This document shows positions 6,551 to 64,000 of a DNA stretch of 64,000 nucleotides, piece by piece. A program made the translations under genes and the position numbers. The DNA is from Macrostomum hystrix (taxonomy: Eukaryota > Animalia > Platyhelminthes): assembly GCA_950097015.1 (NCBI GenBank), contig CATNEN010000029.1, positions 5,146,001-5,210,000 of the forward strand, written 5' to 3'. The notes under the pieces were generated by a model, which was not told where the DNA came from, did no database searches, and saw nothing but the letters and a program-made list of their open reading frames with translations. The stretch's first letter is position 1. Every line of letters begins with the position of its first letter.

Positions 6551-7267
6551 TGGCTGATTCCGCGCATGAAAATGTTGGTAAAGGGATGAAAGAAAAGCCC
6601 AGGAGGAAATGGGTTGATTAAAAGCAGTATATAGGAAAACCCGCGAATATATATAACATTACTTGGCCTGTGTGTTGCGCTTACATGTTGCAATTTTTAA
6701 CATAAAAATAAATAAGGTAGAGCGTTTACTGTCTTATCTACTTTAAGTAGAATTTATAGTGTTTTATATTCCAAACAAACGCTGTAATGTACGCCCGTAC
6801 TTAAGCGCTTGAAATATACTGCTGCATCTCTGCATGCGTAGCTTTTGTCTGAATCTATTTTTAGAAACAATTCTTGGGAGATTTCTGTCATTATGTTATA
6901 TTTCACCATAGCCTGAAATGCATTCACTAAGGTATGCCATCCATTAGGCCTTCAAATGTCTTGAATGCATGTCCATTAATCACTAAGTACGCATAGTGCT
7001 TTACAGACTGCAACATCAAATTCTACTCTAATATCATAGAATGCGACCCGGGTTCTAACTGATAAATATTGAATTGTGCAGCTTGTTAAGAAATCATGAA
7101 TACACAGTTTAGACAGATCCTATATGGGTTGGTTAGTTCGGAATCAATGTCGGCGCTCTTCTACAGTATACGAGATAGAATTATAGAGTAGCCTAGTCTA
7201 AAGAGAAAGTAACCAAGTTAAACTGAATTTTTAACTGTCAGAAAACTTACACTTTTTACATAGAATC

Positions 7268-10200: not shown

Positions 10201-10335
10201 ACTATCTCCTGTTAGACAGAACTATCTCCTGTTAGACAGAACTATCTCCTGTTAGACAGAACTATATTCTGTTAGACAGAACTATCTCCTGTTAGACAGA
10301 ACTATATTCTGTTAGACAGAACTATCTCCTGTTAG
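7268..10335. repeat. 20-bp minisatellite, ~150 copies
   Basis: Unit gttagacagaactatctcct with recurrent variants ...actatattct and ...actgtctcct. Confidence 0.99.
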
Positions 10336-20600: not shown

Positions 20601-23600
20601 GATAGAAATAGATTGATAGAGAATTGATAGAAATAGATGGGTAGAGAATTGATAGAAATAGATGGATAGAGAATTGATAGAAATAGATGGATAGAGAATT
20701 GATAGAAATAGATTGATAGAGAATTGATAGAAATAGATAGATAGAGAATTTGATAGAAATAGATGGATAGAGAATTGATAGAAATAGATTAATAGAGAAT
20801 TGATAGAAATATATGGATAGAGAATTTGATATAAATAGATGGATAGAGAATTGATAGAAATAGATTGATAGAGAATTGATAGAAATATATGGATAGAGAA
20901 TTGATAGAAATAGATGGATAGAGAATTGATAGAAATAGATTGATAGAGAATTGATAGAAATAGATGGATAGAGAATATGATAGAAATAGATGGATAGAGA
21001 ATTGATAGAAATAGATTGACAGAGAATTGATAGAAATAGATGGATAGAGAATTGATAGAAATAGATGGATAGAGAATTGATAGAAATAGATGGGTAGAGA
21101 ATTGATAGAAATAGATGGATAGAGAATTGATATAAATAGATGGATAGAGAATTGATAGAAATATATGGAAAGAGAATTGATAGAAATAGATGGATAGAGA
21201 ATTGATAGAAATAGATGGATAGAGAATTGATAGAAATAGATGGATAGAGAATTGATAGAAATAGATGGATAGAGAATTGATAGAAATAGATGGGTAGAGA
21301 ATTGATAGAAATAGATGGATAGAGAATTGATAGAAATAGATGGATAGAGAATTGATAGAAATAGATTGATAGAGAATTGATAGAAATAGATAGATAGAGA
21401 ATTTGATAGAAATAGATGGATAGAGAATTGATAGAAATAGATTAATAGATAATTGATAGAAATAGATGGATAGAGAATTGATAGAAATAGATGAGAAAGA
21501 GAATTGATAGAAATAGATGGATAGAGAATTGATAGAAATAGATGGATAGAGAATTGATAGAAATAGATGGATAGAGAATTGATATAAATAGATGGGTAGA
21601 GAATTGATAGAAATAGATGGATAGAGAATTGAAAGAAATAGATGGATAGAGAATTGATAGAAATAGATGGATAGAGAATTGATATAAATAGATGGATAGA
21701 GAATTGATAGAAATAGATTGATAGAGAATTGATAGAAATAGATGGATAGAGAATTGATAGAAATAGATGGATAGAGAATTGATAGAAATAGATTGATAGA
21801 GAATTGATAGAAATAGATAGATAGAGAATTTGATAGAAATAGATGGATAGAGAATTGATAGAAATAGATTAATAGATAATTGATAGAAATATATTGATAG
21901 AGAATTGATAGAAATAGATGGATAGAGAATTTGATAGAAATAGATTGATAGAGAATTGATAGAAATAGATGGATAGAGAATTTGATAATAATAGATGGAT
22001 AGAGAATTGATAGAAATAGATGGATAGAGAATTGATATAAATAGATGGATAGAGAATTTGATATAAATAGATGGATAGAGAATTGATAGAAATAGATGCA
22101 TAGAGAATTGATAGAAATAGATGGATAGAGAATTGATAGAAATAGATGGATAGAGAATTTGATATAAATAGATGGATAGAGAATTGATAGAAATAGATGG
22201 ATAGAGAATTCATAGAAATAGATGGATAGAGAATTGATAGAAATAGATGGATAGAGAATTGATAGAAATAGATGGATAGAGAATTTGATATAAATATATG
22301 GATAGAGAATTGATAGAAATAGATGGATAGAGAATTGATAGAAATAGATGGATAGAGAATTGATAGAAATAGATGGATAGAGAATTGATAGAAATAGATG
22401 GATAGAGAATTGATAGAAATAGATGGATAGAGAATTGATAGAAATAGATGGATAGAGAATTTGATAGAAATAGATGGATAGAGAATTCATAGAAATAGAT
22501 GGATAGAGAATTGATAGAAATAGATGGATAGAGAATTGATAGAAATAGATGGATAGAGAATTTGATAGAAATAGATGGATAGAGAATTGATAGAAATAGA
22601 TGGATAGAGAATTTGATATAAATAGATGGATAGAGAATTGATAGAAATAGATGGATAGAGAATTGATAGAAATAGATGGATAGAGAATTGATAGAAATAG
22701 ATGGATAGAGAATTGATAGAAATAGATGGATAGAGAATTGATAGAAATAGATGGATAGAGAATTGATAGAAATAGATGGATAGAGAATTGATAGAAATAG
22801 ATGGATAGAGAATTGATAGAAATAGATGGATAGAGAATTGATAGAAATAGATGGATAGAGAATTGATAGAAATAGATTGATAGAGAATTGATAGAAATAG
22901 ATGGATAGAGAATTGATAGAATAGATTGATAGAGAATTGATAGAAATAGATGGATAGAGAATTGATAGAATAGATTGATAGAGAATTGATAGAATAGATG
23001 GATAGAGAATTGATAGAATAGATTGATAGAGAATTGATAGAATAGATTGATAGAGAATTGATAGAAATTATCTATCAGATCTACAAAAATGTTTTTTTCG
23101 GCCATTGTTTCTCAGTTTCTCGGCTCATGGCCCGGTACATACGCACACCCTTAACCTCAAACGCCTGTCAATTACTGTCAATCAACTTGCATACATTTAG
23201 AAAGCAGGTAAGAACCAGTTGTTTAAATTTCATGAATATCTGAGAAGAGGGCCAATCAATTGATCAATATTTCTTCTTCTGGACAGTGAGTTAAGTCACC
23301 ACCTAAGACTATGACAGAAGAACTACTGAGGAGTTAATGCTATGCGATAAAAACATTTTCAAGTCATTTCTCTTTTCCTGAAGATAAGTTTTCGCTCTCA
23401 AAGATCTCGTCATCTCAAAAGCATCCCTAATTCTCACAATGATCCCTAATTCTCACAATGATCCCTAATCTCACAACCATCCCTAATCTGACAATGATCC
23501 CTAATCTCACAATGATCCCTAATCTGACAATGATCCCTAATCTCACAACCATCCCTAATCTGACAATGATCCCTAATCTCACAACCATCCCTAATCTGAC

Positions 23601-31264: not shown

Positions 31265-33548
31265 AATGTGTGTGTGCAACTGCAAGCACTTGTTCAGCCA
31301 CTTGTTTATTAGTAACAAAATTATTAACGAAATTAAGAGCAGCAACAATTATTTATTCTAATATGAAAACCAGACTCTCACTATCGGACCCAAACTCTCA
31401 CACTCGGTCCCAGACTCTCACACTCGCTCCCAGACTCTCACACTCGCTCCCAGACTCTCACACTCGCACCCAGACTCTCACACTCGCACCCAGACTCTCA
31501 CACTCGCTCCCAGACTCTAACACTCGCTCCCAGACTCTAACACTCGCTCCCAGACTCTCACACTCGCTCCCAGACTCTCACACTCGCTCCCAGACTCTCA
31601 CACTCGCTCCCAGACTCTCACACTCTCTCCCAGACTCTCACACTCGCACCCAGACTCTCACACTCGCTCCCAGACTCTCACACTCGCTCCCAGACTCTCA
31701 CACTCGCTCCCAGACTCTCACACTCGCTCCCAGACTCTCACACTCGCTCCAAGACTCTCACACTCGCTCCCAGACTCTCACACTCGCACCCAGACTCTAA
31801 CACTCAACACTCGCTCCCAGACTCTCACACTCGCTCCCAGACTCTCACACTCGCTCCCAGACTCTCACACTCGCACCCAGACTCTCACAATCGCTCCCAG
31901 ACTCTCACACTCGCTCCCAGACTCTAAAACTCGCTCCCAGACTCTCACACTCGCTCCAAGACTCTCAAACTCGCTCCTAGACTCTCAAACTCGCACCCAG
32001 ACTCTCACACTCGCACCCAGACTCTCACACTCGCTCCCAGACTCTCACACTCGCTCCCAGACTCTAAAACTCGCTCCCAGACTCTCACACTCGCTCCAAG
32101 ACTCTCAAACTCGCTCCTAGACTCTCAAACTCGCACCCAGACTCTCACACTCGCTCCCAGACTCTCACACTCGCTCCCAGACTCTAAAACTCGCTCCCAG
32201 ACTCTCACACTCGCTCCCAGACTCTCACACTCGCACCCAGACTCTCACACTCGCTCCCAGACTCTCACACTCGCTCCCAGACTAAAAAACTCGCTCCCAG
32301 ACTCTCACACTCGCTCCCAGACTCTCACACTCGCTCCCAGACTCTCACACTCGCTCCCAGACTCTCACACTTGTATCTAGTCTCTCAAACTCGCATCTAG
32401 TCTCTCAAAGTCGCATCTAGTCTCTCAAACACGCATCTAGTCTAGTCTCTCAAACTCGCATCTAGTCTAGTCTCTCAAACTCGCATCTAGTCTCTCAAAG
32501 TCGCATCTAGTCTCTCAAAGTCGCATCTAGTCTCTCAAACTCGCATGTAGTCTCTCAAACTCGCATCTAGTCTCTCAAACTCGCATCTAGTCTTTCAAAC
32601 TCGCATCTAGTCTCTCAAACTCGCATCTAGTCTCTCAAACTCGCCTCTAGTCTCTCAAACTCGCATCTAGTCTCTCAAACTCGCATCTAGTCTCTCACAC
32701 TGTGGTAGAAATTCGGGTGGCTGTACGCGGCTGTAAGCTCTGGTCCAACAGGGCCAGGCTAAATGCCTATGTCTAACTAGGTGTTAAACAAATGAAATAT
32801 TGCAGGCGGCCAATGTGTCGATCTGGTGAACAGATTCCAGTGCATCTGCCGGCTGAATTACCGCGGCCCCAGGTGCTCGGTAAATCTTCGCGACTGTCGC
32901 AATCTTACCTGCCTCAACGGTGGAGTCTGTCGCGACCTGGCCGACGGCCTCGGCTGCGACTGTCCGGCCGGACTCAGTGGCAAATTCTGCGAACTCGGCC
33001 TGCCTCCGGCCGACGTGTCCACGATAGAACGGCCGATGCAGAGCGAGCAGGGTCAGCAGCCAGCCATGGCCTTGCTGCTCCTGGCGGCCGCAGTTCTGCT
33101 CCTCCTCCTGCTGCTCCTGGCGTCGGTCGGCTTCGCCTTCGCCTGGCGGCGCAGGAAGCGCAGAAGCGCTCAGCAGCAGCCGGGGCTCTCCGCTGCGGTT
33201 GCTATGGGAACCGCCGAACCAGTTTATGACGACAATGACGACTTGGCAGACGAAGACAACAGCGCCAGGCACCGACAGAAGCTTGGCAGCTTCGGTGAGA
33301 CAACCAAACTGCGCAGCTTCGAAGACTTTTACCTCGTTAGTGGCGGAGGCGGCGGCGGCGGCGGCGCAGGCGGCGGTCGAGACGCCCCAATGAACAACAG
33401 CCGACGAAACCTGCTACATCGGTCTGGCCCAGCCGACAGCAAGATGGACTACTTTGCGCACAAACAGATTAACAACCTGCTCAGCGCTAGCCAAGGCTGC
33501 CTGAGTCCAAGGGACCGGCGACTCACAATGGCCTACTCGCATGGGTAA
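14613..33548 (+). CDS. Delta: Delta-like Notch ligand (signal peptide, MNNL/C2, DSL, DOS EGF1-2, 7 EGF in total, TM, ICD); ~707 aa if it ends at 33548, ~763 aa with the extra exon 34204-34375
   Basis: Phase-consistent GT-AG exons: 14613-14699, 17927-18241, 18799-18874, 24037-24288, 24693-24747, 25170-25303, 26400-26587, 28888-29161 and 32806-33548. DSL motif CQKQCMPRDDLLGHYSCSAAGEMRCLPGYSGDRC. TM ALLLLAAAVLLLLLLLLASVGFAFAW followed by RRRKRR. ICD has MNN and QINNL motifs. No cysteine-rich vWC-like region after the EGFs, so Delta rather than Serrate/Jagged. Confidence 0.9.
14745..16130. repeat. 45-bp minisatellite in Delta intron 1
   Basis: Unit tacagacactgtaggcagacagaaacacagaacatgagaagcatg (15-aa periodicity in the ORF track). 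Confidence 0.97.
16988..17918. repeat. 17-bp minisatellite ending ~8 nt before Delta exon 2
   Basis: Unit cacctga(c/a)acccgaa(c/g)a, ~54 copies. Confidence 0.98.
17927..18241 (+). CDS. Delta: Delta exon 2 (MNNL/C2 domain with Gly9 insert)
   Basis: AGSNLEFQLSLRGFSNPAGQLADGRCC...CRTFVRVC...W; ttcag|GCC, GTG|GTGAGT. Confidence 0.88.
18799..18874 (+). CDS. Delta: Delta exon 3 (MNNL, ADRAFAVVFDLLH...)
   Basis: tgtag|GCT ... CTG G|GTGAGT; bridges phase 0 to phase 1 as required. Confidence 0.75.
19030..19560. repeat. Purine-rich (AGAGAAT/AGAT) minisatellite in Delta intron 3
   Basis: agagaatagagaatagata units. Confidence 0.93.
19930..23068. repeat. 25-bp purine-rich minisatellite (~125 copies) in Delta intron 3
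   Basis: Unit gatagagaattgatagaaatagatg. Confidence 0.98.
23425..23960. repeat. 18-bp minisatellite
   Basis: Unit atccctaatct(c/g)acaatg. Confidence 0.96.
24037..24288 (+). CDS. Delta: Delta exon 4 (DSL domain)
   Basis: ccacag|GC CTG ...; YRFRCRLGFYGHSCQKQCMPRDDLLGHYSC; C|GTAAGG. Confidence 0.93.
24293..24525. repeat. 21-bp minisatellite starting at the exon-4 donor
   Basis: Unit agagctctagagatagggaag / agagatctagtgatagggaag. Confidence 0.9.
24693..24747 (+). CDS. Delta: Delta exon 5 (EGF1, first half)
   Basis: ccgcag|CC ACT TGC: PTCQPACVQGTCTGPNRC; AG|GTGAGT. Confidence 0.85.
25170..25303 (+). CDS. Delta: Delta exon 6 (EGF1 end and EGF2, DOS motif)
   Basis: CFTGWRGANCSACIPMPQCSSRGYCNKPLECLCPPGYGGLFCDI; G|GTCAGT. 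Confidence 0.88.
25795..26232. repeat. 20-bp minisatellite flanked by a 133-bp direct repeat
   Basis: Unit cacacacagatgaccacaat; flanks 25656-25788 and 26233-26365 are nearly identical. Confidence 0.95.
26400..26587 (+). CDS. Delta: Delta exon 7 (EGF3, start of EGF4)
   Basis: DLRWCQHNPNPCLHGGQC...CLNGGLCLT; ACG|GTGAGG. Confidence 0.9.
26620..26972. repeat. 42-bp minisatellite after the exon-7 donor
   Basis: Unit gaatgcggaggtgtgaagtttggtgg(g/c)tgcgagtgaaagggg, ~8 copies. Confidence 0.95.
27575..28060. repeat. ~24-bp minisatellite
   Basis: Unit ccccctgtctgtaaatctcatttg. Confidence 0.9.
28740..28840. repeat. 22-bp repeat, ~4.5 copies
   Basis: Unit gtgggacagacaggtagggaga. Confidence 0.93.
28888..29161 (+). 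CDS. Delta: Delta exon 8 (EGF4 end, EGF5 with poly-Gly insert, EGF6 start)
   Basis: atccag|AAC TCC ...CACPIGFYGSRC...CSCHPGWSGRGC...CDN; G|GTGAGT. Confidence 0.88.
29275..30100. repeat. 20-bp minisatellite, same family as 25795-26232
   Basis: Unit cacacacagatgaccacaat. Confidence 0.96.
31217..31262. repeat. (TG)n microsatellite
   Basis: Perfect TG run. Confidence 0.98.
31372..32700. repeat. Composite 20-bp minisatellite
   Basis: cagactctcacactcgctcc up to ~32370, then tagtctctcaaactcgcatc. Confidence 0.96.
32806..33548 (+). CDS. Delta: Delta exon 9 (EGF6-7, TM, ICD)
   Basis: tgcag|GC GGC CAA TGT; in-frame TAA at 33546-33548 overlaps a strong donor GG|GTAAGA at 33545. Confidence 0.9.
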
Positions 33549-47579: not shown

Positions 47580-50500
47580 AACGTCAACTGGGGAGTCATC
47601 ATCAAAATGGGGATCAAGGTAAACTGGGGGATAATCGTCAACTGGAGGATCTTGGTAAACTGGGGGATCATTGTCAACTGGGGGATAATTGTCAACTGGG
47701 GAATCATCATCAAATGGGGGATCATGGTCAACTTGGGGATCATTGTCAACTAGGGGGATCATTGTCAACTGGGGGATCATTCTCAACTGGGGGATCATGG
47801 TCAACTTGGGAATCATTGTCAACTGGGGGATCTTTGTCAACTGTGGGATCATTGTCAACTGGGGGATCATTGTCAACTGGGGGATCGTTGTCAACCTGGG
47901 GGTTCATTGTCAACTGGGGGATCATTGTCAACTGGGGGATCATTGTCAACTGGGGGATCATCATCAACTGGGGGATCATTGTCAACTGGGGGTTCATTGT
48001 CAACCGGCGGGATCATTGTCAACTGGGGGATCATTGTCAACTGGGGGATCATTGTCAACTTGGGGATCATTCTCAACTAGGGGATCATTGTCAACTGGGG
48101 GATCATTCTCAACTAGGGGATCATTCTCAACTGGGGGATCATTGTCAACTGGGGGATCATTGTCAACTGGGGGATCATTGTCAACTGGGGGATCATTGTC
48201 AACTGGGGGAACATTGTCAACTGGAGGAACATTTTTAACTGGGGATCATCATCAATAGGGAGACTTCATCAACTGGGGGATCATTGTGAACTGGGGGATC
48301 TTTGTTAACTGGGGGCTCATTGTCAACTGGGGGATCATTCTCAACTGGGGGATCATTGTCAACTGGGTGATCATTCTCAACTGGAGGATCATTGTCAACT
48401 GGGGGATCATTCTCAACTGGGGGGAATTGTGTTCAACTGGGGGATCATTGTCAACTGGGGGATCATCATCAACTGGGGGATTATTGTCAACTGGGGGATC
48501 ATTGTCAACTGGGGGATCATTGTCAACTGGGGGATCATTCTCAACTGGGGGATCATTGTCAACTGGGGGATCATTTTCAACTGGGGGATCATCATCAACT
48601 GGGGGATCATCATCAACCGGCGGGATCATTGTCAACTGGGGGATCATTGTCAACTGGGGGGAATTGTGTTCAACTGGGGGATCATTGTGAACTGGGGGAT
48701 CTTTGTTAACTGGGGGATCATTGTGAACTGGGGGATCTTTGTTAACTGGGGGATCATTGTCAACTGGGGGATCATTCTCAACTGGGGGATCATTGTCAAC
48801 TGGGTGATCATCATCAACTGGGGGATTATTGTCAACTGGGGGAACATTGTCAACTGGAGGAACATTTTTAACTGGGGATCATCATCAATGGTGAGACTTC
48901 ATCAACTGGGGATCATTGTGAACTGGGGGATCTTTGTTAACTGGGGGATTATTGTCAACTGGGGGATCATTCTCAACTGGGGGATCATTGTCAACTGGGT
49001 GATCATTCTCAACTGGAGGATCATTGTCAACTGGGGGATCATTGTCAACTGGGGGGAATTGTGTTCAACTGGGGGATCATTGTCAACTGGGGGATCATTG
49101 TCAACTGGGGGATCATTGTAAACTGGGGGATCATTGTCAACTGGGGGATCATTGTCAACTGGGGGATCATTCTCAACTGGGGGATCATTGTCAACTGGGG
49201 GATCATTTTCAACTGGGGGATCATCATCAACTGGGGGATCATCATCAACCGGCGGGATCATTGTCAACTGGGGGATCATTGTCAACTTGGGGATCATTGT
49301 CAACTGGGGGATCATTGTCAACTGGGGGATCATTCTCAACTGGGGGATCATTCTCAACTGGGGGATCATTGTCAACTGGGGGGAATTGTGTTCAACTGGG
49401 GGATCATTGTGAACTGGGGGATCTTTGTTAACGGGGGGATCATTGTGAACTGGGGGATCTTTGTTAACTGGGTGATCATCATCAACTGGGGGATTATTGT
49501 CAACTGGGGGAACATTGTCAACTGGAGGAACATTTTTAACTGGGGATCATCATCAATGGTGAGACTTCATCAACTGGGGATCATTGTGAACTGGGGGATC
49601 TTTGTTAACTGGGGGATCATTGTCAACTGGGGGATCATTCTCAACTGGGGGATCATTGTCAACTGGGTGATCATCATCAACTGGGGGATTATTGTCAACT
49701 GGGGGAACATTGTCAACTGGAGGAACATTTTTAACTGGGGATCATCATCAATGGTGAGACTTCATCAACTGGGGATCATTGTGAACTGGGGGATCTTTGT
49801 TAACTGGGGGATTATTGTCAACTGGGGGATCATTCTCAACTGGGGGATCATTGTCAACTGGGTGATCATTCTCAACTGGAGGATCATTGTCAACTGGGGG
49901 ATCATTGTCAACTGGGGGGAATTGTGTTCAACTGGGGGATCATTGTCAACTGGGGGATCATTGTCAACTGGGGGATCATTGTAAACTGGGGGATCATTGT
50001 CAACTGGGGGATCATTGTCAACTGGGGGATCATTCTCAACTGGGGGATCATTGTCAACTGGGGGATCATTTTCAACTGGGGGATCATCATCAACTGGGGG
50101 ATCATCATCAACCGGCGGGATCATTGTCAACTGGGGGATCATTGTCAACTTGGGGATCATTGTCAACTGGGGGATCATTGTCAACTGGGGGATCATTCTC
50201 AACTGGGGGATCATTCTCAACTGGGGGATCATTGTCAACTGGGGGGAATTGTGTTCAACTGGGGGATCATTGTGAACTGGGGGATCTTTGTTAACGGGGG
50301 GATCATTGTGAACTGGGGGATCTTTGTTAACTGGGTGATCATCATCAACTGGGGGATTATTGTCAACTGGGGGAACATTGTCAACTGGAGGAACATTTTT
50401 AACTGGGGATCATCATCAATGGTGAGACTTCATCAACTGGGGATCATTGTGAACTGGGGGATCTTTGTTAACTGGGGGATTATTGTCAACTGGGGGATCA

Positions 50501-50630
50501 TTCTCAACTGGGGGATCATTGTCAACTGGGGGGTCATTTTCAACTGGGGGATCATTGTCAACTGGGGGATCATTCTCAACTGGGGGATCATTCTCAACTG
50601 GGGGATCATTGTCAACTGTGGGTTCATTGT
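47580..50630. repeat. 18-bp G-tract minisatellite with an internal 863-bp duplication
   Basis: Unit gggggatcattgtcaact; identical ORF-track entries offset by 863 bp (48902/49765, 49024/49887). Confidence 0.97.
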
Positions 50631-51443
50631 AGCTTTAAAAAGCTGTAAATTCAGCTGCTAAAAAGTATATACTAGACGAATTAAAAGTATTTCTGCTCCC
50701 CGAAGGGGGGCAAAACTTGCTAGTCATTTACTCAAACTTCACCGAGGAAGCATTTGAGTACAGTGTGAGATTGAAATCAAACTGATAAGTCCGAGGGTTC
50801 ATAGCAGTTGCACTGCATAGCAGCAAAAGACAGAACACATTTTATTTGGCCGCATTAAAAAAATTGCAGCTTAAAGAAAATGCTTTGTGTTTTCATATTC
50901 AGTAGTTTGAGGCAGAATGTTTTCGCATGCGTTACGTTAAAGTACAGCGTAGGTAACTGCTTCGGAATCGGCCTGAGGCTCAACTAGAAAGCAAGCAAAA
51001 ATTAAAACAAATCAACGATCATATAGTGCAAGAAGTAGTGCTCAAATTGGCGAGCATTAAAATCAGGCATAGACTAAAATTAATCGAAAGTAGAACTTCA
51101 AGGCAGCTGTGCAGAGAGCAAAAGTGCACAATTTTGAGGTCGGCAGGCAGTTTATGTTACGCGATTAATATGCATATGAGAAGGAAAAACAACATGGAAT
51201 TTGATTTAATGAAAACAAAAAATAACCAAGAATAAATCACATTTTTGCTGCGAGTTTTGCATATAGAGAGACTGCGCGACAACTGCGCCACGGAGGCTTC
51301 GTTGTAGTTTGGATTTTCAATTCTCGATCACACTGGCTTGATCAAATCGACTTTTATAGTGACACATCGTTAAAATTGTCCTTCGGTCATGACTTTGAGC
51401 AGGTTGGCAACCAATCAATCATTGGGATCTGGGACTACTGGAA

Positions 51444-51746
51444 TCAGCACTTCAGCCAGGCTGGCGGAGTCTTGCCCTGCTTCCTATACCTGTTGCACTC
51501 GTACGCTCGCATGAGCACATTCTCAGGTCCGCGCCGCTTCCGGTTGAGCACGGCCTCGCCGACATCCGGGCGCTGCCTCATCAGGTAGGTCAGCGATTGC
51601 GCAACAGCCAGACGATTGTCTTCAATCGGTTCGGCGTTCAAATCGAGTAGCAACGCTTTCGAAGGCGACAGGGCGACGGCGTCCAGGACTGGTAGGAGGA
51701 CCATCGATAGCGCCAGACAGAATTGAAGGCCTGTGTTGAGTAGCAT
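51444..51746 (-). CDS. Secreted prepropeptide, copy 1 (100 aa; signal peptide, RKRR, 28-aa two-Cys mature peptide GPENVLMRAYECNRYRKQGKTPPAWLKC)
   Basis: Intronless ORF with a hydrophobic N-terminus, an acidic pro region and a furin-type R-K-R-R at residues 69-72. A paralogue lies 2.96 kb away, and TATA plus Inr lie upstream. Confidence 0.8.
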   Translation of the reverse strand: MLLNTGLQFCLALSMVLLPVLDAVALSPSKALLLDLNAEPIEDNRLAVAQSLTYLMRQRPDVGEAVLNRKRRGPENVLMRAYECNRYRKQGKTPPAWLKC

Positions 51747-51820
51747 AGCTTCGTCAAATAGCTGTCAGTGTTCTCTTGGCTGTGTCTCTAATTGTCTCTC
51801 TCTCTCTCGGTCAAGTGAAG

Positions 51821-51853
51821 TGAACTGGGACTGCCGCCGCTGGCCTATTTATA
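51821..51853 (-). promoter_or_regulatory. Core promoter of peptide gene copy 1 (TATA box and initiator)
   Basis: Minus-strand TATAAATA at 51853-51846; Inr-like CCAGTT with its A at 51825, 28 nt downstream. Confidence 0.7.
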
Positions 51854-52063
51854 ACCGGCTCCGGGCGGCGGCTGGGGTGTCTGCGCCGGCTTGGAATCGC
51901 CTTCTATTTTTAGCTCCTCCCCCGCCGCCGCCGCCGCCCCCAGTCCGGAGCAGCTGAGGGGCGTGGGAATAGAGCCTTCTAGTCTGACGCATTTCGCGGC
52001 CAATCGACCCGCTGCAGCGGCAGACTGGACAATCTGGCCCAAGTTTTCAAATGAATGAACCAA

Positions 52064-52460
52064 TGACTCAGGCCCGAAAATGGACTTTGCCAATGCAGGC
52101 GTAGGGGAACCAATAGCGGATAAGTGTGTAGGCAGTCTGCTTTGAAGAAGAGGCTGTGCCTTGTTTACAAAATATAGCTTTCACAAATAAAAAAGCAGTG
52201 CATTCCAACCTAACAAACTGAAATAAAATACTATGGAGAATGCTAAGCGCGGCCACTGATGTCTGCCCCCCCCCACTCCGCAACACAGACTTGCGAATTC
52301 CACACGGCTTTACAATTTTACAATTTACAACCTAGACCAGCCTCGACTTTCTTAATAAGGGCCTTTTTGCTCTCCGCTCAGACAGACAATGCTTTAATTA
52401 ATGCATCCAAACTCCCAAGTGAGGTTTTGGGTGAGTCAGGCTTTAGTCAGGCCTGACTCA
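52064..52460. promoter_or_regulatory. Cluster of three AP-1 (TGA[C/G]TCA) sites upstream of peptide gene copy 1
   Basis: TGACTCA 52064-52070, TGAGTCA 52432-52438, TGACTCA 52454-52460. Confidence 0.45.
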
Positions 52461-52994
52461 TGTCTCACTTCAGCTGCTCATAAGTGTCTAGGGAAGTGTC
52501 TAGTGTTTACATTTTTTTCAGGGAAAATTCAACGTTGTTAGAGAATCAGGCGGAGTGTTGGGAGAACGCCCACAACTTCCTTGGCTAACAGAAATGGGAC
52601 AGGGCTCTACCAACAGGCCGCGCCGCCCACGCAGTCCTCCATTTGTCCGATAGCTCCTAGCTGTAGCTAATACCCAAGTTCCAGCGAGTATTAAGCAGCT
52701 TTTTTATGTCGGAAGATTTGCCCAAGCTTTCTCCCGCAAGTGAGTACAATTTGATTCTAAACTGTTGGTGCATGCAAACAGCAGGTGTCTCAAGGTCCGC
52801 CTACCTCCTGTGCAAACACTGCACTAGCGGAGCTGCATTCTGAGTGCGAGTAAACGTCGCCATTGTCACTGACTGCTCAAATTTTAATTCAATGTCAAAT
52901 AATGCTTTCGGTGCATGGAATGCTCTTATCTGTCTTCTCTAGCTTGTCAGCAGGGTAGGATAGTGCCGATAGCACACCAAAAGCCGCATTCCAC

Positions 52995-54025
52995 ACTTTG
53001 CTCTTCCACAGATCTCACTGTTTCCTTTATAGATCTCACCCGCTCTACTATGGATCTCACCGTCTCCTTTATAGATCTCACCCGCTCTACTATGGATCTC
53101 ACTGACTCCTTTATAGATCTCACCCGCTCTACTATGGATCTCACCGTCTCCTTTATAGATCTCACCCACTCTACTATGGATCTCACTGTCTCCTTTATAG
53201 ATCTCACCCGCTCTACTATGGATCTCACTGACTCCTTTATAGATCTCACCCGCTCTACTATGGATCTCACCGTCTCCTTTATAGATCTCACCCGCTCTAC
53301 TATGGATCTCACCGTCTCCTTTATAGATCTCACCCGCTCTACTATGGATCTCACTGACTCCTTTATAGATCTCACCCGCTCTTCCATGGATCTCCCCTAT
53401 CTTCTCTGAATCTCACCCTCTCTTCTCAGAATCTCACCTTCTCTTTTCTAAATATCATCCTGTCTTCTCTGGATCTCACCCTGTCCTCTATTGATCTCAA
53501 CCTCTCTTCTATTGATCTCACCCTCTCTTCTATTGATCTGACCCCCTCTTCTATTGATCTCACCCTGTCCTCTATTGATCTCACCCTCTCTTCTATTGAT
53601 CTGACCCCCTCTTCTATTGATCTCACCCTGACTTCTCTGAATATCATCCTCTCTTCTCTGGATCTCACCCTCTCTTCTATGGATCTCACCCTCTCTTCTC
53701 TGGATCTCACCCTGTCTTCTCTGGATTTCACCCTGTCTTCTCTGGATCTCAACCTCTCTTCTATGGATCTCACACTGTCTTCTATGGATCTCAACCTCTC
53801 TTCTATGGATCTCACCCTGTCTTCTATGGATCTCACCCTGTCTTCTCTGGATCTCACCCTCTCTTCTCTGGATCTCACCCTCTATTCTCTGGACCTCACC
53901 TATCTTCTATGGATCTCATCCTGTCTTCTCTGAATCTCACCCTCTCTTCAATAGATCTCACCCTCTCTTCTCTGAATCTCACCCTCTCTTCAATAGATCT
54001 CACCCTCTCTTCTCTGAATCTCACT
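52995..54025. repeat. 21-bp minisatellite (42-bp dimer in its first half) between the two peptide genes
   Basis: Unit gatctcaccctctcttctatg; dimer atggatctcaccgtctcctttatagatctcacccgctctact. Confidence 0.95.
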
Positions 54026-54031
54026 AAAATC

Positions 54032-54809
54032 GACTAAAATTAATTGACAGTAGAACTTCAAGGCAGCTGTGCAGAGAGCAAAAGTGCACAATTTTGAGGT
54101 CGGCAGGCAGTTTATGTAACGCGATTAATATGCATATGAGAATCAATATGGAATTTGATTGAAGGAAAACAAAAAGAAAAAATATCCAAGAATAAATCAC
54201 ATTTTTGCTGCGAGTTTTGCATATAGAGAGACTGCGCGACAACTGCTCCACGGAGGCTTCGTTGTAGTTTGGATTTTCAATTCTCGATCACACTGGTTTG
54301 ATCAAATCAACTTTTATAGTGTCACATCGTTAAAATTGTCCTTCGGTCATGACTTTGAGCAGGTTGGCAACCAGTCAATCATTGGGATCTGGGACTACTG
54401 GAACCAGCACCTCAGCCAGGCTGGCGGAGTCTTGCCCTGCTTCCTATACCAGTTGCACTCGTACCATCGCATGAGCACATACTCAGGTGCTCGCCGCTTC
54501 CGGTTGAGCACGGCCTCGCTGACATCCGGGCGCTGCCTCATCAGGTAGGTCAGCAGTTGCGCAACAGCCAGACGATTGTCTTCAATCGGCTCGGCGTTCA
54601 AATCGAGTAACAACGCTTTCGAAGGCGACAGGGCGACGGCGTCCATGACTGGTAGGAGGACCATCGATAGCGCCAGACAGAATTGAAGGCCTGTGTTGAG
54701 TAGCATAGCTTCGTCAAATAGCTGTCAGTGTTCTCTTGGCTGTGTCTCTAATTGTCTCTCTCTCTCGGTCAAGTGAAGTGAACTGGGACTGCCGCCGCTG
54801 GCCTATTTA
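54032..54809. repeat. ~780-bp segmental duplication of 51072-51851 carrying peptide gene copy 2
   Basis: Colinear near-identity from gactaaaattaat to gcctattta. Confidence 0.95.
54395..54706 (-). CDS. Secreted prepropeptide, copy 2 (103 aa; mature APEYVLMRWYECNWYRKQGKTPPAWLRCWFQ)
   Basis: Same architecture as copy 1 with an intact ORF, but the TATA box is interrupted by a mariner element. Confidence 0.75.
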   Translation of the reverse strand: MLLNTGLQFCLALSMVLLPVMDAVALSPSKALLLDLNAEPIEDNRLAVAQLLTYLMRQRPDVSEAVLNRKRRAPEYVLMRWYECNWYRKQGKTPPAWLRCWFQ

Positions 54810-55400
54810 CGAGGGTTGTGTGATAAATTCGCTGACATACTTTCATAGCGTCTGTTTCTTTTGTACTTCGGGGCAGAATTTTTCGATGCTCGTACAGACT
54901 AAGGTACCATCGATCTTATTGTCTATGGAAAATGTTCCCTCTGGCTTTTGAGACAAGGCAGAAATCGAGTGGCATTCAAACCACCCTTTTATCCAGTATG
55001 GAGAAAAGTGAAGCTACCAAGCGCAGTGCACTGTCTTTTCGTCGTTGTGGAAGCAGCAGAAGAAGCAGGCTGATATTTACCCCGAGCTGCTGCAAATCTT
55101 TAGCGAGGATGCACCTTCGAAACAAACTGTGTCAAACTAAACTGCTGACTCCTGTCCAACTGCAAGAGAGGGTCCAGATGTGCCGCCACCTACTCAACGC
55201 CTATCAAAACGAGCACGACTTTCTTGGCCGCCTGGTGACTGGTGATGAAACACGTGGTTTCACTTCTACGAACCAGAAACGAAACGGCAGAGCAGCGTCT
55301 GGAAGGCTACTCACGAACCCCCACCGGTCAAGGCCAAGGCGGTGCAGTCAGCAGGTAAGCGCATGGCCACCGTGTTCTGGGACAGAGAAGGCATCTTGCT
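54810..55400 (+). mobile_element. Degenerate mariner (Tc1/mariner superfamily) DNA transposon, left part
   Basis: Starts after TA (54808-54809) with CGAGGGTTGTGTGATAAATTCGC, where homology to copy 1 ends abruptly; transposase fragments follow. The right TIR is not inside the window. Confidence 0.88.
54998..55400 (+). pseudogene. Mariner transposase pseudogene
   Basis: Fragments in shifting frames: MEKSE; LWKQQKKQADIYPELLQIFSEDAPSKQTVS (HTH); KLLTPVQLQERVQMCRHLL...FLGRLVTGDET; WFHFYEPETKRQSSVW...KAKAVQSAGKRMATVFWDREGILL. There is an internal deletion, a 2-bp duplication after GDET, and truncation by the satellite. Confidence 0.9.
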
Positions 55401-58400
55401 GCAGTCAATTTAAAGTTGCAGTCTATTTACAGTTGCAGTCTATTTACAGTTGCAGTCTATTTACAGTTGCAGTCTATTTACAGTTGCAGTCTATTTAAAG
55501 TTGCAGTCTATTTACAGTTGCAGTCTATTTAAAGTTGCAGTCTATTTAAAGTTGCAGTCTATTTACAGTTGCAGTCTATTTAAAGTTGCAGTCTATTTAA
55601 AGTTGCAGTCAATTTAAAGTTGCAGTCTATTTACAGTTGCAGTCTATTTAAAGTTGCAGTCTATTTAAAGTTGCAGTCTATTTAAAGCTGCAGTCAATTT
55701 AAAGTTGCAGTCTATTTAAAGTTGCAGTCTATTTAAAGTTGCCGTCTATTTAAAGTTGCAGTCTATTTAAAGTTGCAGTCTATTTACAGTTGCCGTCTAT
55801 TTAAAGTTGCAGTCTATTTACAGTTGCAGTCTATTTACAGTTGCCGTCTATTTAAAGTTGCAGTCTATTTACAGTTGCAGTCTATTTAAAGTTGCAGTCT
55901 ATTTACAGTTGCAGTCTATTTAAAGTTGCAGTCTATTTACAGTTGCAGTCTATTTACAGTTGCAGTCTATTTAAAGTTGCAGTCTATTTACAGTTGCAGT
56001 CTATTTAAAGTTGCAGTCTATTTACAGTTGCAGTCTATTTAAAGTTGCAGTCTATTTAAAGTTGCAGTCTATTTACAGTTGCAGTCTATTTACAGTTGCC
56101 GTCTATTTAAAGTTGCAGTCTATTTACAGTTGCAGTCTATTTACAGTTGCAGTCTATTTACAGTTGCAGTCTATTTAAAGTTGCAGTCTATTTACAGTTG
56201 CAGTCTATTTACAGTTGCCGTCTATTTAAAGTTGCAGTCTATTTACAGTTGCAGTCTATTTACAGTTGCAGTCTATTTAAAGTTGCAGTCTATTTAAAGT
56301 TGCAGTCTATTTACAGTTGCCGTCTATTTAAAGTTGCAGTCTATTTACAGTTGCAGTCTATTTAAAGTTGCAGTCTATTTAAAGTTGCAGTCTATTTAAA
56401 GTTGCAGTCTATTTACAGTTGCAGTCTATTTACAGTTGCCGTCTATTTAAAGTTGCAGTCTATTTACAGTTGCAGTCTATTTAAAGTTGCAGTCTATTTA
56501 CAGTTGCAGTCTATTTACAGTTGCAGTCTATTTAAAGTTGCAGTCTATTTAAAGTTGCAGTCTATTTACAGTTGCAGTCTATTTAAAGTTGCAGTCTATT
56601 TACAGTTGCAGTCTATTTACAGTTGCAGTCTATTTACAGTTGCAGTCTATTTACAGTTGCAGTCTATTTACAGTTGCAGTCTATTTAAAGTTGCAGTCTA
56701 TTTACAGTTGCCGTCTATTTAAAGTTGCAGTCTATTTACAGTTGCAGTCTATTTACAGTTGCCGTCTATTTAAAGTTGCAGTCTATTTAAAGTTGCAGTC
56801 TATTTACAGTTGCAGTCTATTTACAGTTGCAGTCTATTTAAAGTTGCAGTCTATTTACAGTTGCAGTCTATTTAAAGTTGCAGTCTATTTAAAGTTGCAG
56901 TCTATTTACAGTTGCAGTCTATTTACAGTTGCAGTCTATTTACATTTGCAGTCTATTTAAAGTTGCAGTCTATTTACAGTTGCAGTCTATTTACAGTTGT
57001 AGTCTATTTAAAGTTGTAGTCTATTTAAAGTTGCGGTCTATTTACAGCTGCAGTCTATTTAAAGTTGCAGTCTATTTAAAGTTGCAGTCTATTTAAAGTT
57101 GCAGTCTATTTAAAGTTGCAGTCTATTTACAGTTGCCGTCTATTTAAAGTTGCAGTCTATTTAAAGTTGCAGTCTATTTAAAGTTGCAGTCTATTTACAG
57201 TTGCAGTCTATTTACAGTTGCAGTCTATTTACAGTTGCAGTCTATTTAAAGTTGCAGTCTATTTACAGTTGCAGTCTATTTAAAGTTGCAGTCTATTTAC
57301 AGTTGCAGTCTATTTAAAGTTGCAGTCTATTTAAAGTTGCAGTCTATTTACAGTTGCAGTCTATTTACAGTTGCAGTCTATTTAAAGTTGCAGTCTATTT
57401 ACAGTTGCAGTCTATTTACAGTTGCAGTCTATTTACAGTTGCAGTCTATTTACAGTTGCCGTCTATTTAAAGTTGCAGTCTATTTACAGTTGCCGTCTAT
57501 TTAAAGTTGCAGTCTATTTACAGTTGCAGTCTATTTAAAGTTGCAGTCTATTTAAAGTTGCAGTCTATTTACAGTTGCCGTCTATTTAAAGTTGCAGTCT
57601 ATTTACAGTTGCAGTCTATTTAAAGTTGCAGTCTATTTAAAGTTGCAGTCTATTTACAGTTGCAGTCTATTTACAGTTGCAGTCTATTTACAGTTGCAGT
57701 CTATTTAAAGTTGCAGTCTATTTACAGTTGCCGTCTATTTAAAGTTGCAGTCTATTTACAGTTGCAGTCTATTTACAGTTGCCGTCTATTTAAAGTTGCA
57801 GTCTATTTAAAGTTGCAGTCTATTTACAGTTGCAGTCTATTTACAGTTGCAGTCTATTTAAAGTTGCAGTCTATTTAAAGTTGCAGTCTATTTACAGTTG
57901 CAGTCTATTTAAAGTTGCAGTCTATTTACAGTTGCCGTCTATTTAAAGTTGCAGTCTATTTAAAATTGCAGTCTATTTACAGTTGCAGTCTATTTACAGT
58001 TGCAGTCTATTTACAGTTGCAGTCTATTTAAAGTTGCAGTCTATTTACAGTTGCCGTCTATTTAAAGTTGCCGTCTATTTACAGTTGCAGTCTATTTACA
58101 GTTGCAGTCTATTTACAGTTGCAGTCTATTTACAGTTGCAGTCTATTTACAGTTGCCGTCTATTTAAAGTTGCAGTCTATTTACAGTTGCAGTCTATTTA
58201 CAGTTGCAGTCTATTTAAAGTTGCAGTCTATTTACAGTTGCAGTCTATTTACAGTTGCAGTCTATTTACAGTTGCAGTCTATTTACAGTTGCAGTCTATT
58301 TACAGTTGCAGTCTATTTACAGTTGCAGTCTATTTAAAGTTGCAGTCTATTTACAGTTGCAGTCTATTTACAGTTGCAGTCTATTTACAGTTGCCGTCTA

Positions 58401-61400
58401 TTTAAAGTTGCAGTCTATTTAAGGTTGCAGTCTATTTACAGTTGCAGTCTATTTACAGTTGCAGTCTATTTAAAGTTGCAGTCTATTTACAGTTGCAGTC
58501 TATTTAAAGTTGCAGTCTATTTAAAGTTGCAGTCTATTTACAGTTGCAGTCTATTTACAGTTGCAGTCTATTTAAAGTTGCAGTCTACTAACAGTTGCCG
58601 TCTATTTAAAGTTGCAGTCTATTTAAAGTTGCAGTCTATTTACAGTTGCAGTCTATTTAAAGTTGCAGTCTATTTACAGTTGCCGTCTATTTAAAGTTGC
58701 AGTCTATTTAAAATTGCAGTCTATTTACAGTTGCAGTCTATTTACAGTTGCCGTCTATTTAAAATTGCAGTCTATTTAAAGTTGCAGTCTATTTAAAGTT
58801 GCAGTCTATTTAAAGTTGCAGTCTATTTAAAGTTGCAGTCTATTTAAAGTTGCAGTCTATTTAAAGCTGCAGTCAATTTAAAGTTGCAGTCTATTTACAG
58901 TTGCAGTCTATTTAAAGTTGCCGTCTATTTAAAGTTGCAGTCTATTTAAAGTTGCAGTCTATTTACAGTTGCCGTCTATTTAAAGTTGCAGTCTATTTAC
59001 AGTTGCAGTCTATTTACAGTTGCCGTCTATTTAAAGTTGCAGTCTATTTACAGTTGCAGTCTATTTAAAGTTGCAGTCTATTTACAGTTGCAGTCTATTT
59101 AAAGTTGCAGTCTATTTACAGTTGCAGTCTATTTACAGTTGCAGTCTATTTAAAGTTGCAGTCTATTTACAGTTGCAGTCTATTTAAAGTTGCAGTCTAT
59201 TTACAGTTGCAGTCTATTTAAAGTTGCAGTCTATTTAAAGTTGCAGTCTATTTACAGTTGCAGTCTATTTACAGTTGCCGTCTATTTAAAGTTGCAGTCT
59301 ATTTACAGTTGCAGTCTATTTACAGTTGCAGTCTATTTACAGTTGCAGTCTATTTAAAGTTGCAGTCTATTTACAGTTGCAGTCTATTTACAGTTGCCGT
59401 CTATTTAAAGTTGCAGTCTATTTACAGTTGCAGTCTATTTACAGTTGCAGTCTATTTAAAGTTGCAGTCTATTTAAAGTTGCAGTCTATTTACAGTTGCC
59501 GTCTATTTAAAGTTGCAGTCTATTTACAGTTGCAGTCTATTTAAAGTTGCAGTCTATTTAAAGTTGCAGTCTATTTAAAGTTGCAGTCTATTTACAGTTG
59601 CAGTCTATTTACAGTTGCCGTCTATTTAAAGTTGCAGTCTATTTACAGTTGCAGTCTATTTAAAGTTGCAGTCTATTTACAGTTGCAGTCTATTTACAGT
59701 TGCAGTCTATTTAAAGTTGCAGTCTATTTAAAGTTGCAGTCTATTTACAGTTGCAGTCTATTTAAAGTTGCAGTCTATTTACAGTTGCAGTCTATTTAAA
59801 GTTGCAGTCTATTTACAGTTGCAGTCTATTTACAGTTGCAGTCTATTTACAGTTGCAGTCTATTTAAAGTTGCAGTCTATTTACAGTTGCCGTCTATTTA
59901 AAGTTGCAGTCTATTTACAGTTGCAGTCTATTTACAGTTGCCGTCTATTTAAAGTTGCAGTCTATTTAAAGTTGCAGTCTATTTACAGTTGCAGTCTATT
60001 TACAGTTGCAGTCTATTTAAAGTTGCAGTCTATTTACAGTTGCAGTCTATTTAAAGTTGCAGTCTATTTAAAGTTGCAGTCTATTTACAGTTGCAGTCTA
60101 TTTACAGTTGCAGTCTATTTACATTTGCCGTCTATTTAAAGTTGCAGTCTATTTACAGTTGCAGTCTATTTACAGTTGTAGTCTATTTAAAGTTGTAGTC
60201 TATTTAAAGTTGCGGTCTATTTACAGCTGCAGTCTATTTAAAGTTGCAGTCTATTTAAAGTTGCAGTCTATTTAAAGTTGCAGTCTATTTAAAGTTGCAG
60301 TCTATTTACAGTTGCCGTCTATTTAAAGTTGCAGTCTATTTAAAGTTGCAGTCTATTTAAAGTTGCAGTCTATTTACAGTTGCAGTCTATTTACAGTTGC
60401 AGTCTATTTACAGTTGCAGTCTATTTAAAGTTGCAGTCTATTTACAGTTGCAGTCTATTTAAAGTTGCAGTCTATTTACAGTTGCAGTCTATTTACAGTT
60501 GCAGTCTATTTAAAGTTGCAGTCTATTTACAGTTGCAGTCTATTTAAAGTTGCAGTCTATTTAAAGTTGCAGTCTATTTACAGTTGCAGTCTATTTACAG
60601 TTGCCGTCTATTTAAAGTTGCAGTCTACTTACAGTTGCCGTCTATTTAAAGTTGCAGTCTATTTAAAGTTGCAGTCTATTTACAGTTGCAGTCTATTTAA
60701 AGTTGCAGTCTATTTAAAGTTGCAGTCTATTTACAGTTGCCGTCTATTTAAAGTTGCAGTCTATTTACAGTTGCAGTCTATTTAAAGTTGCAGTCTATTT
60801 AAAGTTGCAGTCTATTTACAGTTGCAGTCTATTTACAGTTGCAGTCTATTTACAGTTGCAGTCTTTTTAAAGTTGCAGTCTATTTACAGTTGCCGTCTAT
60901 TTAAAGTTGCAGTCTATTTACAGTTGCAGTCTATTTACAGTTGCCGTCTATTTAAAGTTGCAGTCTATTTAAAGTTGCAGTCTATTTACAGTTGCAGTCT
61001 ATTTACAGTTGCAGTCTATTTAAAGTTGCAGTCTATTTAAAGTTGCAGTCTATTTACAGTTGCAGTCTATTTAAAGTTGCAGTCTATTTACAGTTGCCGT
61101 CTATTTAAAGTTGCAGTCTATTTAAAATTGCAGTCTATTTACAGTTGCAGTCTATTTACAGTTGCAGTCTATTTACAGTTGCAGTCTATTTAAAGTTGCA
61201 GTCTATTTACAGTTGCCGTCTATTTAAAGTTGCCGTCTATTTACAGTTGCAGTCTATTTAAAGTTGCAGTCTACTAACAGTTGCCGTCTATTTAAAGTTG
61301 CAGTCTATTTAAAGTTGCAGTCTATTTACAGTTGCAGTCTATTTAAAGTTGCAGTCTATTTACAGTTGCCGTCTATTTAAAGTTGCAGTCTATTTAAAAT

Positions 61401-64000
61401 TGCAGTCTATTTACAGTTGCAGTCTATTTACAGTTGCCGTCTATTTAAAATTGCAGTCTATTTAAAGTTGCAGTCTATTTAAAGTTGCAGTCTATTTAAA
61501 GTTGCAGTCTATTTAAAGTTGCAGTCTATTTAAAGTTGCAGTCTATTTAAAGCTGCAGTCAATTTAAAGTTGCAGTCTATTTACAGTTGCAGTCTATTTA
61601 AAGTTGCCGTCTATTTAAAGTTGCAGTCTATTTAAAGTTGCAGTCTATTTACAGTTGCCGTCTATTTAAAGTTGCAGTCTATTTACAGTTGCAGTCTATT
61701 TACAGTTGCCGTCTATTTAAAGTTGCAGTCTATTTACAGTTGCAGTCTATTTAAAGTTGCAGTCTATTTACAGTTGCAGTCTATTTAAAGTTGCAGTCTA
61801 TTTACAGTTGCAGTCTATTTACAGTTGCAGTCTATTTAAAGTTGCAGTCTATTTACAGTTGCAGTCTATTTAAAGTTGCAGTCTATTTACAGTTGCAGTC
61901 TATTTAAAGTTGCAGTCTATTTAAAGTTGCAGTCTATTTACAGTTGCAGTCTATTTACAGTTGCCGTCTATTTAAAGTTGCAGTCTATTTACAGTTGCAG
62001 TCTATTTACAGTTGCAGTCTATTTACAGTTGCAGTCTATTTAAAGTTGCAGTCTATTTACAGTTGCAGTCTATTTACAGTTGCCGTCTATTTAAAGTTGC
62101 AGTCTATTTACAGTTGCAGTCTATTTACAGTTGCAGTCTATTTAAAGTTGCAGTCTATTTAAAGTTGCAGTCTATTTACAGTTGCCGTCTATTTAAAGTT
62201 GCAGTCTATTTACAGTTGCAGTCTATTTAAAGTTGCAGTCTATTTAAAGTTGCAGTCTATTTAAAGTTGCAGTCTATTTACAGTTGCAGTCTATTTACAG
62301 TTGCCGTCTATTTAAAGTTGCAGTCTATTTACAGTTGCAGTCTATTTAAAGTTGCAGTCTATTTACAGTTGCAGTCTATTTACAGTTGCAGTCTATTTAA
62401 AGTTGCAGTCTATTTAAAGTTGCAGTCTATTTACAGTTGCAGTCTATTTAAAGTTGCAGTCTATTTACAGTTGCAGTCTATTTAAAGTTGCAGTCTATTT
62501 ACAGTTGCAGTCTATTTACAGTTGCAGTCTATTTACAGTTGCAGTCTATTTAAAGTTGCAGTCTATTTACAGTTGCCGTCTATTTAAAGTTGCAGTCTAT
62601 TTACAGTTGCAGTCTATTTACAGTTGCCGTCTATTTAAAGTTGCAGTCTATTTAAAGTTGCAGTCTATTTACAGTTGCAGTCTATTTACAGTTGCAGTCT
62701 ATTTAAAGTTGCAGTCTATTTACAGTTGCCGTCTATTTAAAGTTGCAGTCTATTTAAAGTTGCAGTCTATTTAAAGTTGCAGTCTATTTACAGTTGCAGT
62801 CTATTTACAGTTGCAGTCTATTTACAGTTGCAGTCTATTTAAAGTTGCAGTCTATTTACAGTTGCAGTCTATTTAAAGTTGCAGTCTATTTACAGTTGCA
62901 GTCTATTTACAGTTGCAGTCTATTTAAAGTTGCAGTCTATTTACAGTTGCAGTCTATTTAAAGTTGCAGTCTATTTAAAGTTGCAGTCTATTTACAGTTG
63001 CAGTCTATTTACAGTTGCCGTCTATTTAAAGTTGCAGTCTACTTACAGTTGCCGTCTATTTAAAGTTGCAGTCTATTTAAAGTTGCAGTCTATTTACAGT
63101 TGCAGTCTATTTAAAGTTGCAGTCTATTTAAAGTTGCAGTCTATTTACAGTTGCCGTCTATTTAAAGTTGCAGTCTATTTACAGTTGCAGTCTATTTAAA
63201 GTTGCAGTCTATTTAAAGTTGCAGTCTATTTACAGTTGCAGTCTATTTACAGTTGCAGTCTATTTACAGTTGCAGTCTTTTTAAAGTTGCAGTCTATTTA
63301 CAGTTGCCGTCTATTTAAAGTTGCAGTCTATTTACAGTTGCAGTCTATTTACAGTTGCCGTCTATTTAAAGTTGCAGTCTATTTAAAGTTGCAGTCTATT
63401 TACAGTTGCAGTCTATTTACAGTTGCAGTCTATTTAAAGTTGCAGTCTATTTAAAGTTGCAGTCTATTTACAGTTGCAGTCTATTTAAAGTTGCAGTCTA
63501 TTTACAGTTGCCGTCTATTTAAAGTTGCAGTCTATTTAAAATTGCAGTCTATTTACAGTTGCAGTCTATTTACAGTTGCAGTCTATTTACAGTTGCAGTC
63601 TATTTAAAGTTGCAGTCTATTTACAGTTGCCGTCTATTTAAAGTTGCCGTCTATTTACAGTTGCAGTCTATTTACAGTTGCAGTCTATTTACAGTTGCAG
63701 TCTATTTACAGTTGCAGTCTATTTAAAGTTGCAGTCTATTTACAGTTGCAGTCTATTTACAGTTGCAGTCTATTTACAGTTGCAGTCTATTTACAGTTGC
63801 AGTCTATTTACAGTTGCAGTCTATTTAAAGTTGCAGTCTATTTACAGTTGCAGTCTATTTACAGTTGCAGTCTATTTACAGTTGCCGTCTATTTAAAGTT
63901 GCAGTCTATTTAAGGTTGCAGTCTATTTACAGTTGCAGTCTATTTACAGTTGCAGTCTATTTAAAGTTGCAGTCTATTTACAGTTGCAGTCTATTTAAAG
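55398..64000. repeat. 17-bp satellite, ~500 copies, continuing beyond the window, with kb-scale higher-order repeats
   Basis: Unit (c/a)agttgc(a/c)gtctattta; rare variant gctgcagtcaattta at ~55687, 58866 and 61552. Confidence 0.99.

Follow-up and report, generated by a model that had tools for sequence, protein, structure and literature searches.

Does a repeat-rich stretch of DNA from the flatworm Macrostomum hystrix carry two peptide genes, one gene with a failing copy, or only chance open reading frames (ORFs)? The stretch, a window of 64,000 nucleotides (contig CATNEN010000029.1, positions 5,146,001 to 5,210,000), holds two similar intronless ORFs on its reverse strand, here called copy 1 and copy 2. 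A preliminary description had presented them as a tandem pair of unrecognised genes for secreted, furin-processed peptides. Translation confirmed the anatomy given there: each ORF encodes a leader, an acidic pro-segment, the basic motif RKRR and a mature part of 28 (copy 1) or 31 (copy 2) residues with two cysteines. We find a single working gene at this locus and a second, doubtful copy, a recent duplicate that a transposon has separated from its promoter. The reading that we favour, with a little better than even confidence, is that copy 1 is an orphan prepropeptide gene encoding a secreted signalling peptide (neuropeptide- or hormone-like), and that copy 2 is a promoter-split young duplicate that is mostly drifting.

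Copy 1 and its orthologue in Macrostomum lignano

We compared the predicted proteins with 5.8 billion proteins in a word-indexed search and with 1.84 billion representatives in a full phmmer pass. In both searches the sole true relative was Mlig013743g1, a hypothetical protein of M. lignano that is 59% identical across the full precursor (E = 1e-20), and a profile search returned only this protein (P0001). It shares a long identical run with the window protein within residues 61-100. Its 90% cluster includes a second protein, carried on two further contigs. The gene, Mlig013743 (BOX15_Mlig013743g1/g3; PAA64917, PAA47625 and PAA73750), occupies three M. lignano loci, with one copy per locus in contrast to the tandem pair in the window. 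A second phmmer match (P0002) was a 2458-residue low-complexity protein that matched the pro-segment by composition, and it was rejected. Viral contigs, metagenome contigs and Rfam gave no match, and exact-sequence look-ups found neither window protein on record. With relatives found only in Macrostomum, the family is, as judged from these searches, lineage-restricted, in agreement with the preliminary description. The term "unrecognised" used there holds only in part, because the orthologue was already in GenBank as a hypothetical protein. The Mlig013743 identifier had no match in the literature and was absent from the supplements of Macrostomum papers.

Most long ORFs of the six-frame list are generated by minisatellite arrays. 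The window is thus rich in long spurious ORFs, and conservation rather than ORF length must carry the argument for a gene. Between copy 1 and the M. lignano orthologue, we observed a synonymous divergence (dS) of 0.85 and a nonsynonymous divergence (dN) of 0.27 (dN/dS ~0.32; dN < dS, P = 4e-5, Fisher test), and every indel comprised whole codons. Because dN is well below dS and the indels are in frame, copy 1 is a genuine coding gene and not a chance ORF. All three M. lignano loci have a convergent Delta-like gene (MNNL, DSL and EGF domains) 5-7 kb away, and the window contains Delta-like exons in the same relative orientation. The sequence itself thereby places the window in a Macrostomum, as another species or an old duplicated region, and apart from the three sequenced M. 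lignano loci. In the M. lignano locus L001, this neighbour lies at 15477-20381. The syntenic span is ~18 kb in the window versus 5-7 kb in M. lignano, the extra length being satellite DNA.

The M. lignano annotation in GenBank was built from RNA-seq and transcript assemblies, and non-coding and repeat-overlapping models were removed from it (PMC5730564). Since this annotation is transcript-derived, the orthologue is transcribed; its model is labelled "partial" because the ORF runs on without a stop as far as the 5' end of that model. The preliminary description had staked its proposal on the existence of transcripts, and for the family these are documented in M. lignano. We consider it very improbable that the two ORFs arose by chance in repeated DNA. 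The window is 56% minisatellite and has many spurious long ORFs, but cross-species conservation of the frame, dN below dS, synteny and the transcript-derived orthologue model refute this idea. Copy 1 is a real, constrained and syntenic gene, orthologous to the expressed but uncharacterised Mlig013743, and the likeness extends over the leader cleavage region, RKRR, the spacing of the cysteines, the C-terminal Cys, the Delta-like neighbour, the TATA box and a box further upstream.

The TATA box of copy 1, already pointed out in the preliminary description, was present and conserved in M. lignano, and only copy 1 has this promoter. We place the transcription start near 51816-51826, in a conserved initiator-like motif; the transcript-derived gene models of M. 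lignano start ~40 nt after their TATA box. Among non-coding sequences of the window, the upstream box alone gave a BLAST match to each of the three M. lignano loci (96.6% over 29 nt), and it stays conserved although dS between the species has reached the value given above. Its A/T-rich core may resemble a MEF2-type site.

The peptide encoded by copy 1

The leader is 25 residues long in both copies. In copy 1 it has a hydrophobic core (Kyte-Doolittle mean of up to 2.29 over 15 residues), and residues 23-25 form a small-x-small site; core and site are both kept between the species. M. lignano has an identical cleavage-site region (51660-51686), and the leader would direct the precursor to the secretory pathway. 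The pro-segment has 43 residues, a net charge of -2 and an isoelectric point of 4.6 (both copies, by translation). That of M. lignano is 8 codons shorter at one place, 3 longer at another, and neutral, not acidic. A nine-residue block of the pro-segment (51564-51590, reverse strand) is invariant in the window copies and M. lignano and lies beside the 8-codon indel. It may form another functional element, such as a signal for sorting or processing, or an additional peptide. RKRR is invariant in both window copies and all M. lignano loci, and a proprotein convertase would cut after it. A homologue of the convertase PC2 is expressed in M. lignano neurons (PMC4490696).

Cleavage would release the C-terminal 28 residues as a basic, non-amidated peptide (net charge +4, ~3.3 kDa, 1 Trp) with one disulfide, which would close a 17-residue ring ending at the last residue. 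The two Cys codons of this predicted 17-membered ring are at 51495-51497 and 51447-49. We observed exactly two Cys, 15 residues apart, in the mature part of all copies, and the sole other Cys of the precursor is in the leader. A conserved internal basic pair (residues 88-89), followed by Gln-Gly-Lys, lies inside the predicted ring (51459-51476 on the reverse strand, the region of residues 91-96). Cutting at this pair, if it occurs, would yield a peptide of two chains joined by the disulfide.

Conservation of the precursor between the species is blockwise: the leader cleavage region, the nine-residue pro block, RKRR and the mature peptide are kept, and the other sequence is about half identical. 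Copy 1 and M. lignano share 23 of 28 residues in the mature peptide versus 37 of 77 in the remainder of the precursor (P = 0.002). The corresponding dN was 0.115 in the mature part versus 0.36 elsewhere, and the mature part had a dN/dS of 0.27. A mature part that is kept better than its pro-region marks the precursors of hormones and neuropeptides and is the reverse of what is usual in defence peptides and toxins. In an AlphaFold2 model, the mature part was the best predicted (predicted local distance difference test, pLDDT, 80-84), with a helix and then a Pro-containing loop that folds back. The predicted helix was not amphipathic (hydrophobic moment 0.12-0.16; negative mean hydrophobicity). 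Because the mature part is the most conserved and the helix is not amphipathic, these data suggest a signalling rather than a membrane-active peptide, which would act as a neuropeptide or hormone-like ligand.

We could not assign the peptide to a family by Pfam, PDB or fold searches, as the preliminary description had anticipated. Neither precursor matched any Pfam family at E ≤ 10, and the profiles for Sex_peptide, melanin-concentrating hormone (MCH), somatostatin and natriuretic peptides (atrial natriuretic peptide, ANP) were unmatched. The echoes of sex peptide and MCH reported earlier thus find no Pfam support. PDB sequence searches, with a profile and with each mature peptide, detected no relative and no natriuretic peptide. 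Matches to a POU homeodomain, ribosomal uS15 and an antibody chain were due to chance (all E ≥ 0.1). Foldseek against PDB gave no fold match with the AlphaFold2 model, which is weak outside the mature part. A planarian prohormone table had no short words in common with the precursor.

Likenesses to known systems are architectural and are not family assignments, because no profile-based search placed the precursors in a family. C-type natriuretic peptide precursors carry the peptide at the extreme C-terminus, with furin-type release and a 17-membered disulfide ring ending on the last residue. Predicted ring size and C-terminal position are alike in the Macrostomum peptide, but no sequence similarity was detected, and the resemblance is one of architecture only. 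Precursors of the somatostatin, allatostatin-C, urotensin and MCH type release a non-amidated, disulfide-cyclised C-terminal peptide after a basic site, and their mature part is the best conserved. Here too the architecture is alike, but the ring of the Macrostomum peptide is larger, and neither Pfam nor PDB gave a match. Cationic disulfide-looped host-defence peptides share with the Macrostomum peptide a basic charge, one C-terminal loop, aromatic residues, and tandem copies whose mature parts change fast. The Macrostomum peptide differs from them in having no amphipathic helix, a mature part kept between species and no family match.

Copy 2, the mariner-like fragment and the setting of the locus

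The two copies lie in direct repeats of ~785 bp with 94.7% identity over 789 columns (blastn), separated by unique DNA and a 21-bp minisatellite (Table 1). Their proteins are 92% identical, with 13 substitutions in 300 nt. The homology between the copies breaks off two bases into the TATA box of copy 2, right behind a TA. Six of the eight TATA-box bases remain upstream of copy 2, and the conserved upstream box is absent there. Adjoining the shortened TATA box is a degenerate mariner-like transposase fragment interrupted by two or more frameshifts and two or more in-frame stops, and cut on its 3' side by a satellite. The fragment starts right after TA. Its other end has vanished into the satellite, and we found no inverted repeat, nor a further copy in the window or at the M. 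lignano loci. Beyond the break, transposon fragment and satellite extend for 9 kb or more. The promoter of copy 2 is disrupted, and a mariner-type insertion would have split its core promoter and left copy 2 to drift without constraint.

The sequence of copy 2 has also changed. At the position of the ancestral stop, copy 2 has a sense codon, and its protein is three residues longer as a result. The copies differ by eight replacements; polarised with M. lignano as outgroup, six of these arose in copy 2 and none in copy 1, and two were ambiguous (P = 0.03). Pairwise dN/dS between copies 1 and 2 was ~0.9, with a dN of 0.02 in the leader and pro-segment and 0.096 in the mature part. Because substitutions between the copies are so few, an open frame in copy 2 is expected by chance. 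Loss of constraint explains most features of copy 2, which is probably decaying and less probably gaining a new function. The earlier "tandem pair of genes" is therefore not upheld as worded: copy 2 is a duplicate that is ~5% diverged, TATA-truncated, without its original stop, fast-evolving and maybe dying.

Minisatellites dominate the rest of the window. We counted 30 arrays in positions 1-64000, with periods of 15-99 bp and together 56% of the sequence; the biggest are at 55400-64000, 19930-23068, 7265-10335 and 47583-50630. At 351-2708, the reverse strand carries exons of a KLHL-type gene with the BTB-BACK-Kelch domain set (BTB, BACK and Kelch_1 in Pfam).

Table 1. Features of the locus in window coordinates (CDS, coding sequence; UTR, untranslated region; TRF, Tandem Repeats Finder)
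Feature	Position	Strand	Basis
Copy 1 CDS, intronless, 100 codons + stop	51444..51746	-	ORF list; end-to-end alignment with single-block CDS of Mlig013743
Copy 1 predicted signal peptide, residues 1-25	51672..51746	-	Translation, hydrophobicity; assigned by rule
Copy 1 pro-segment, residues 26-68, mildly acidic	51543..51671	-	Translation, alignment
RKRR basic cleavage site, furin/proprotein-convertase motif	51531..51542	-	Predicted cleavage
Copy 1 predicted mature peptide, 28 residues	51447..51530	-	Translation
TATA box of copy 1	51846..51853	-	Alignment with M. lignano promoters; conserved
Upstream promoter box, A/T-rich core, G-rich flanks	51902..51929	-	BLAST, M. lignano loci
Copy 2 CDS, 103 codons + stop	54395..54706	-	ORF list, translation
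Copy 2 predicted mature part, 31 residues, 4 Trp, net charge +3	54398-54490	-	Translation
Degenerate mariner-like transposase fragment	54810..55399	+	Pfam Transposase_1, E 1.2e-9; HTH_48 weak, E 0.025 (stop-free stretches)
Duplication unit 1 (3' flank, CDS, 5' UTR, part of TATA box)	51069..51851		blastn against unit 2
Duplication unit 2	54029..54809		blastn against unit 1; homology ends at 54809, inside TATA box
21-bp minisatellite separating the units	53028..54024		TRF
17-bp-based satellite, higher-order periods 51 and 85, extending to window end	55400..64000		
Delta-like Notch-ligand gene, terminal EGF exons	32803-33548	+	82-88% DNA identity to M. lignano neighbour of Mlig013743

Competing readings and meaning of the locus

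Several observations weigh against a signalling gene accompanied by a drifting copy. The precursor has no amidation signal, and its sequence gave no receptor clue. RKRR is a furin-type site, as typical of constitutive secretion as of neuropeptides. The signal peptide and cleavage were assigned by rule only, from sequence, and the AlphaFold2 model, built from three sequences, is weak overall (pLDDT 61). Expression evidence consists of the transcript-derived gene models of M. lignano. The ORF of copy 2 is intact, and its mature part shows six replacement and no silent changes versus 2.1 expected from the non-coding divergence (P = 0.02). This excess of replacements in copy 2 could reflect selection and not decay.

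The most credible alternative, though an unlikely one, is that gland or epidermal cells secrete a host-defence (antimicrobial) or toxin-like peptide, which diversifies by tandem duplication. A net charge of +3 to +5 in the mature part across copies and a C-terminal disulfide loop would suit such a peptide, as would the fast mature part next to a well-kept leader and pro-segment between the copies (six replacements and no silent change in the mature part) and the three Trp gained by copy 2. Across species, however, the pattern is reversed, with the mature part the most conserved and its dN/dS low; the predicted helix lacks amphipathicity, each M. lignano locus has a single copy, and neither Pfam nor PDB gave a defence or toxin match. 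It is somewhat less credible that both copies work and that copy 2 is a new-function paralogue under positive selection, with a promoter from or beyond the inserted DNA. In its favour are the intact ORF, the six remaining TATA-box bases and a stretch of 28 codons with six replacements and no silent change, a rate threefold that of non-coding sequence. They are opposed by the loss of the upstream box, the transposon fragment and satellite past the break, the loss of the ancestral stop and an overall dN/dS that fits neutrality.

More doubtful again is a bolder version, in which copy 2 is a newborn Trp-enriched paralogue under positive selection and the ligand is diversifying after tandem duplication. 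Such a ligand might act between mates in a hermaphrodite under strong sexual conflict and be driven by transposon-borne regulatory DNA. We regard as improbable, below each of these, a seminal-fluid peptide (allohormone) that is passed at mating in these hermaphrodites and evolves under sexual conflict. A small secreted peptide with a C-terminal loop and the asymmetric acceleration of the derived copy would fit, and Macrostomum has many lineage-specific prostate transcripts (PMC5977470). Yet the mature peptide is kept at the dS given above, and Pfam Sex_peptide gave no match. Nor does the gene identifier occur in the supplements to the seminal-fluid screen, but this test is weak, since genes carry other identifiers there.

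Flatworm peptide signalling has been catalogued mostly from amidated peptides. If our favoured reading of copy 1 is true, an expressed, conserved, non-amidated cyclic peptide would be one added orphan ligand in a transgenic model flatworm. Neither this ligand nor the state of copy 2 alters a general principle. The locus offers a clean natural case in which a transposon that landed in the TATA box either disabled a gene duplicate at birth or rewired it.

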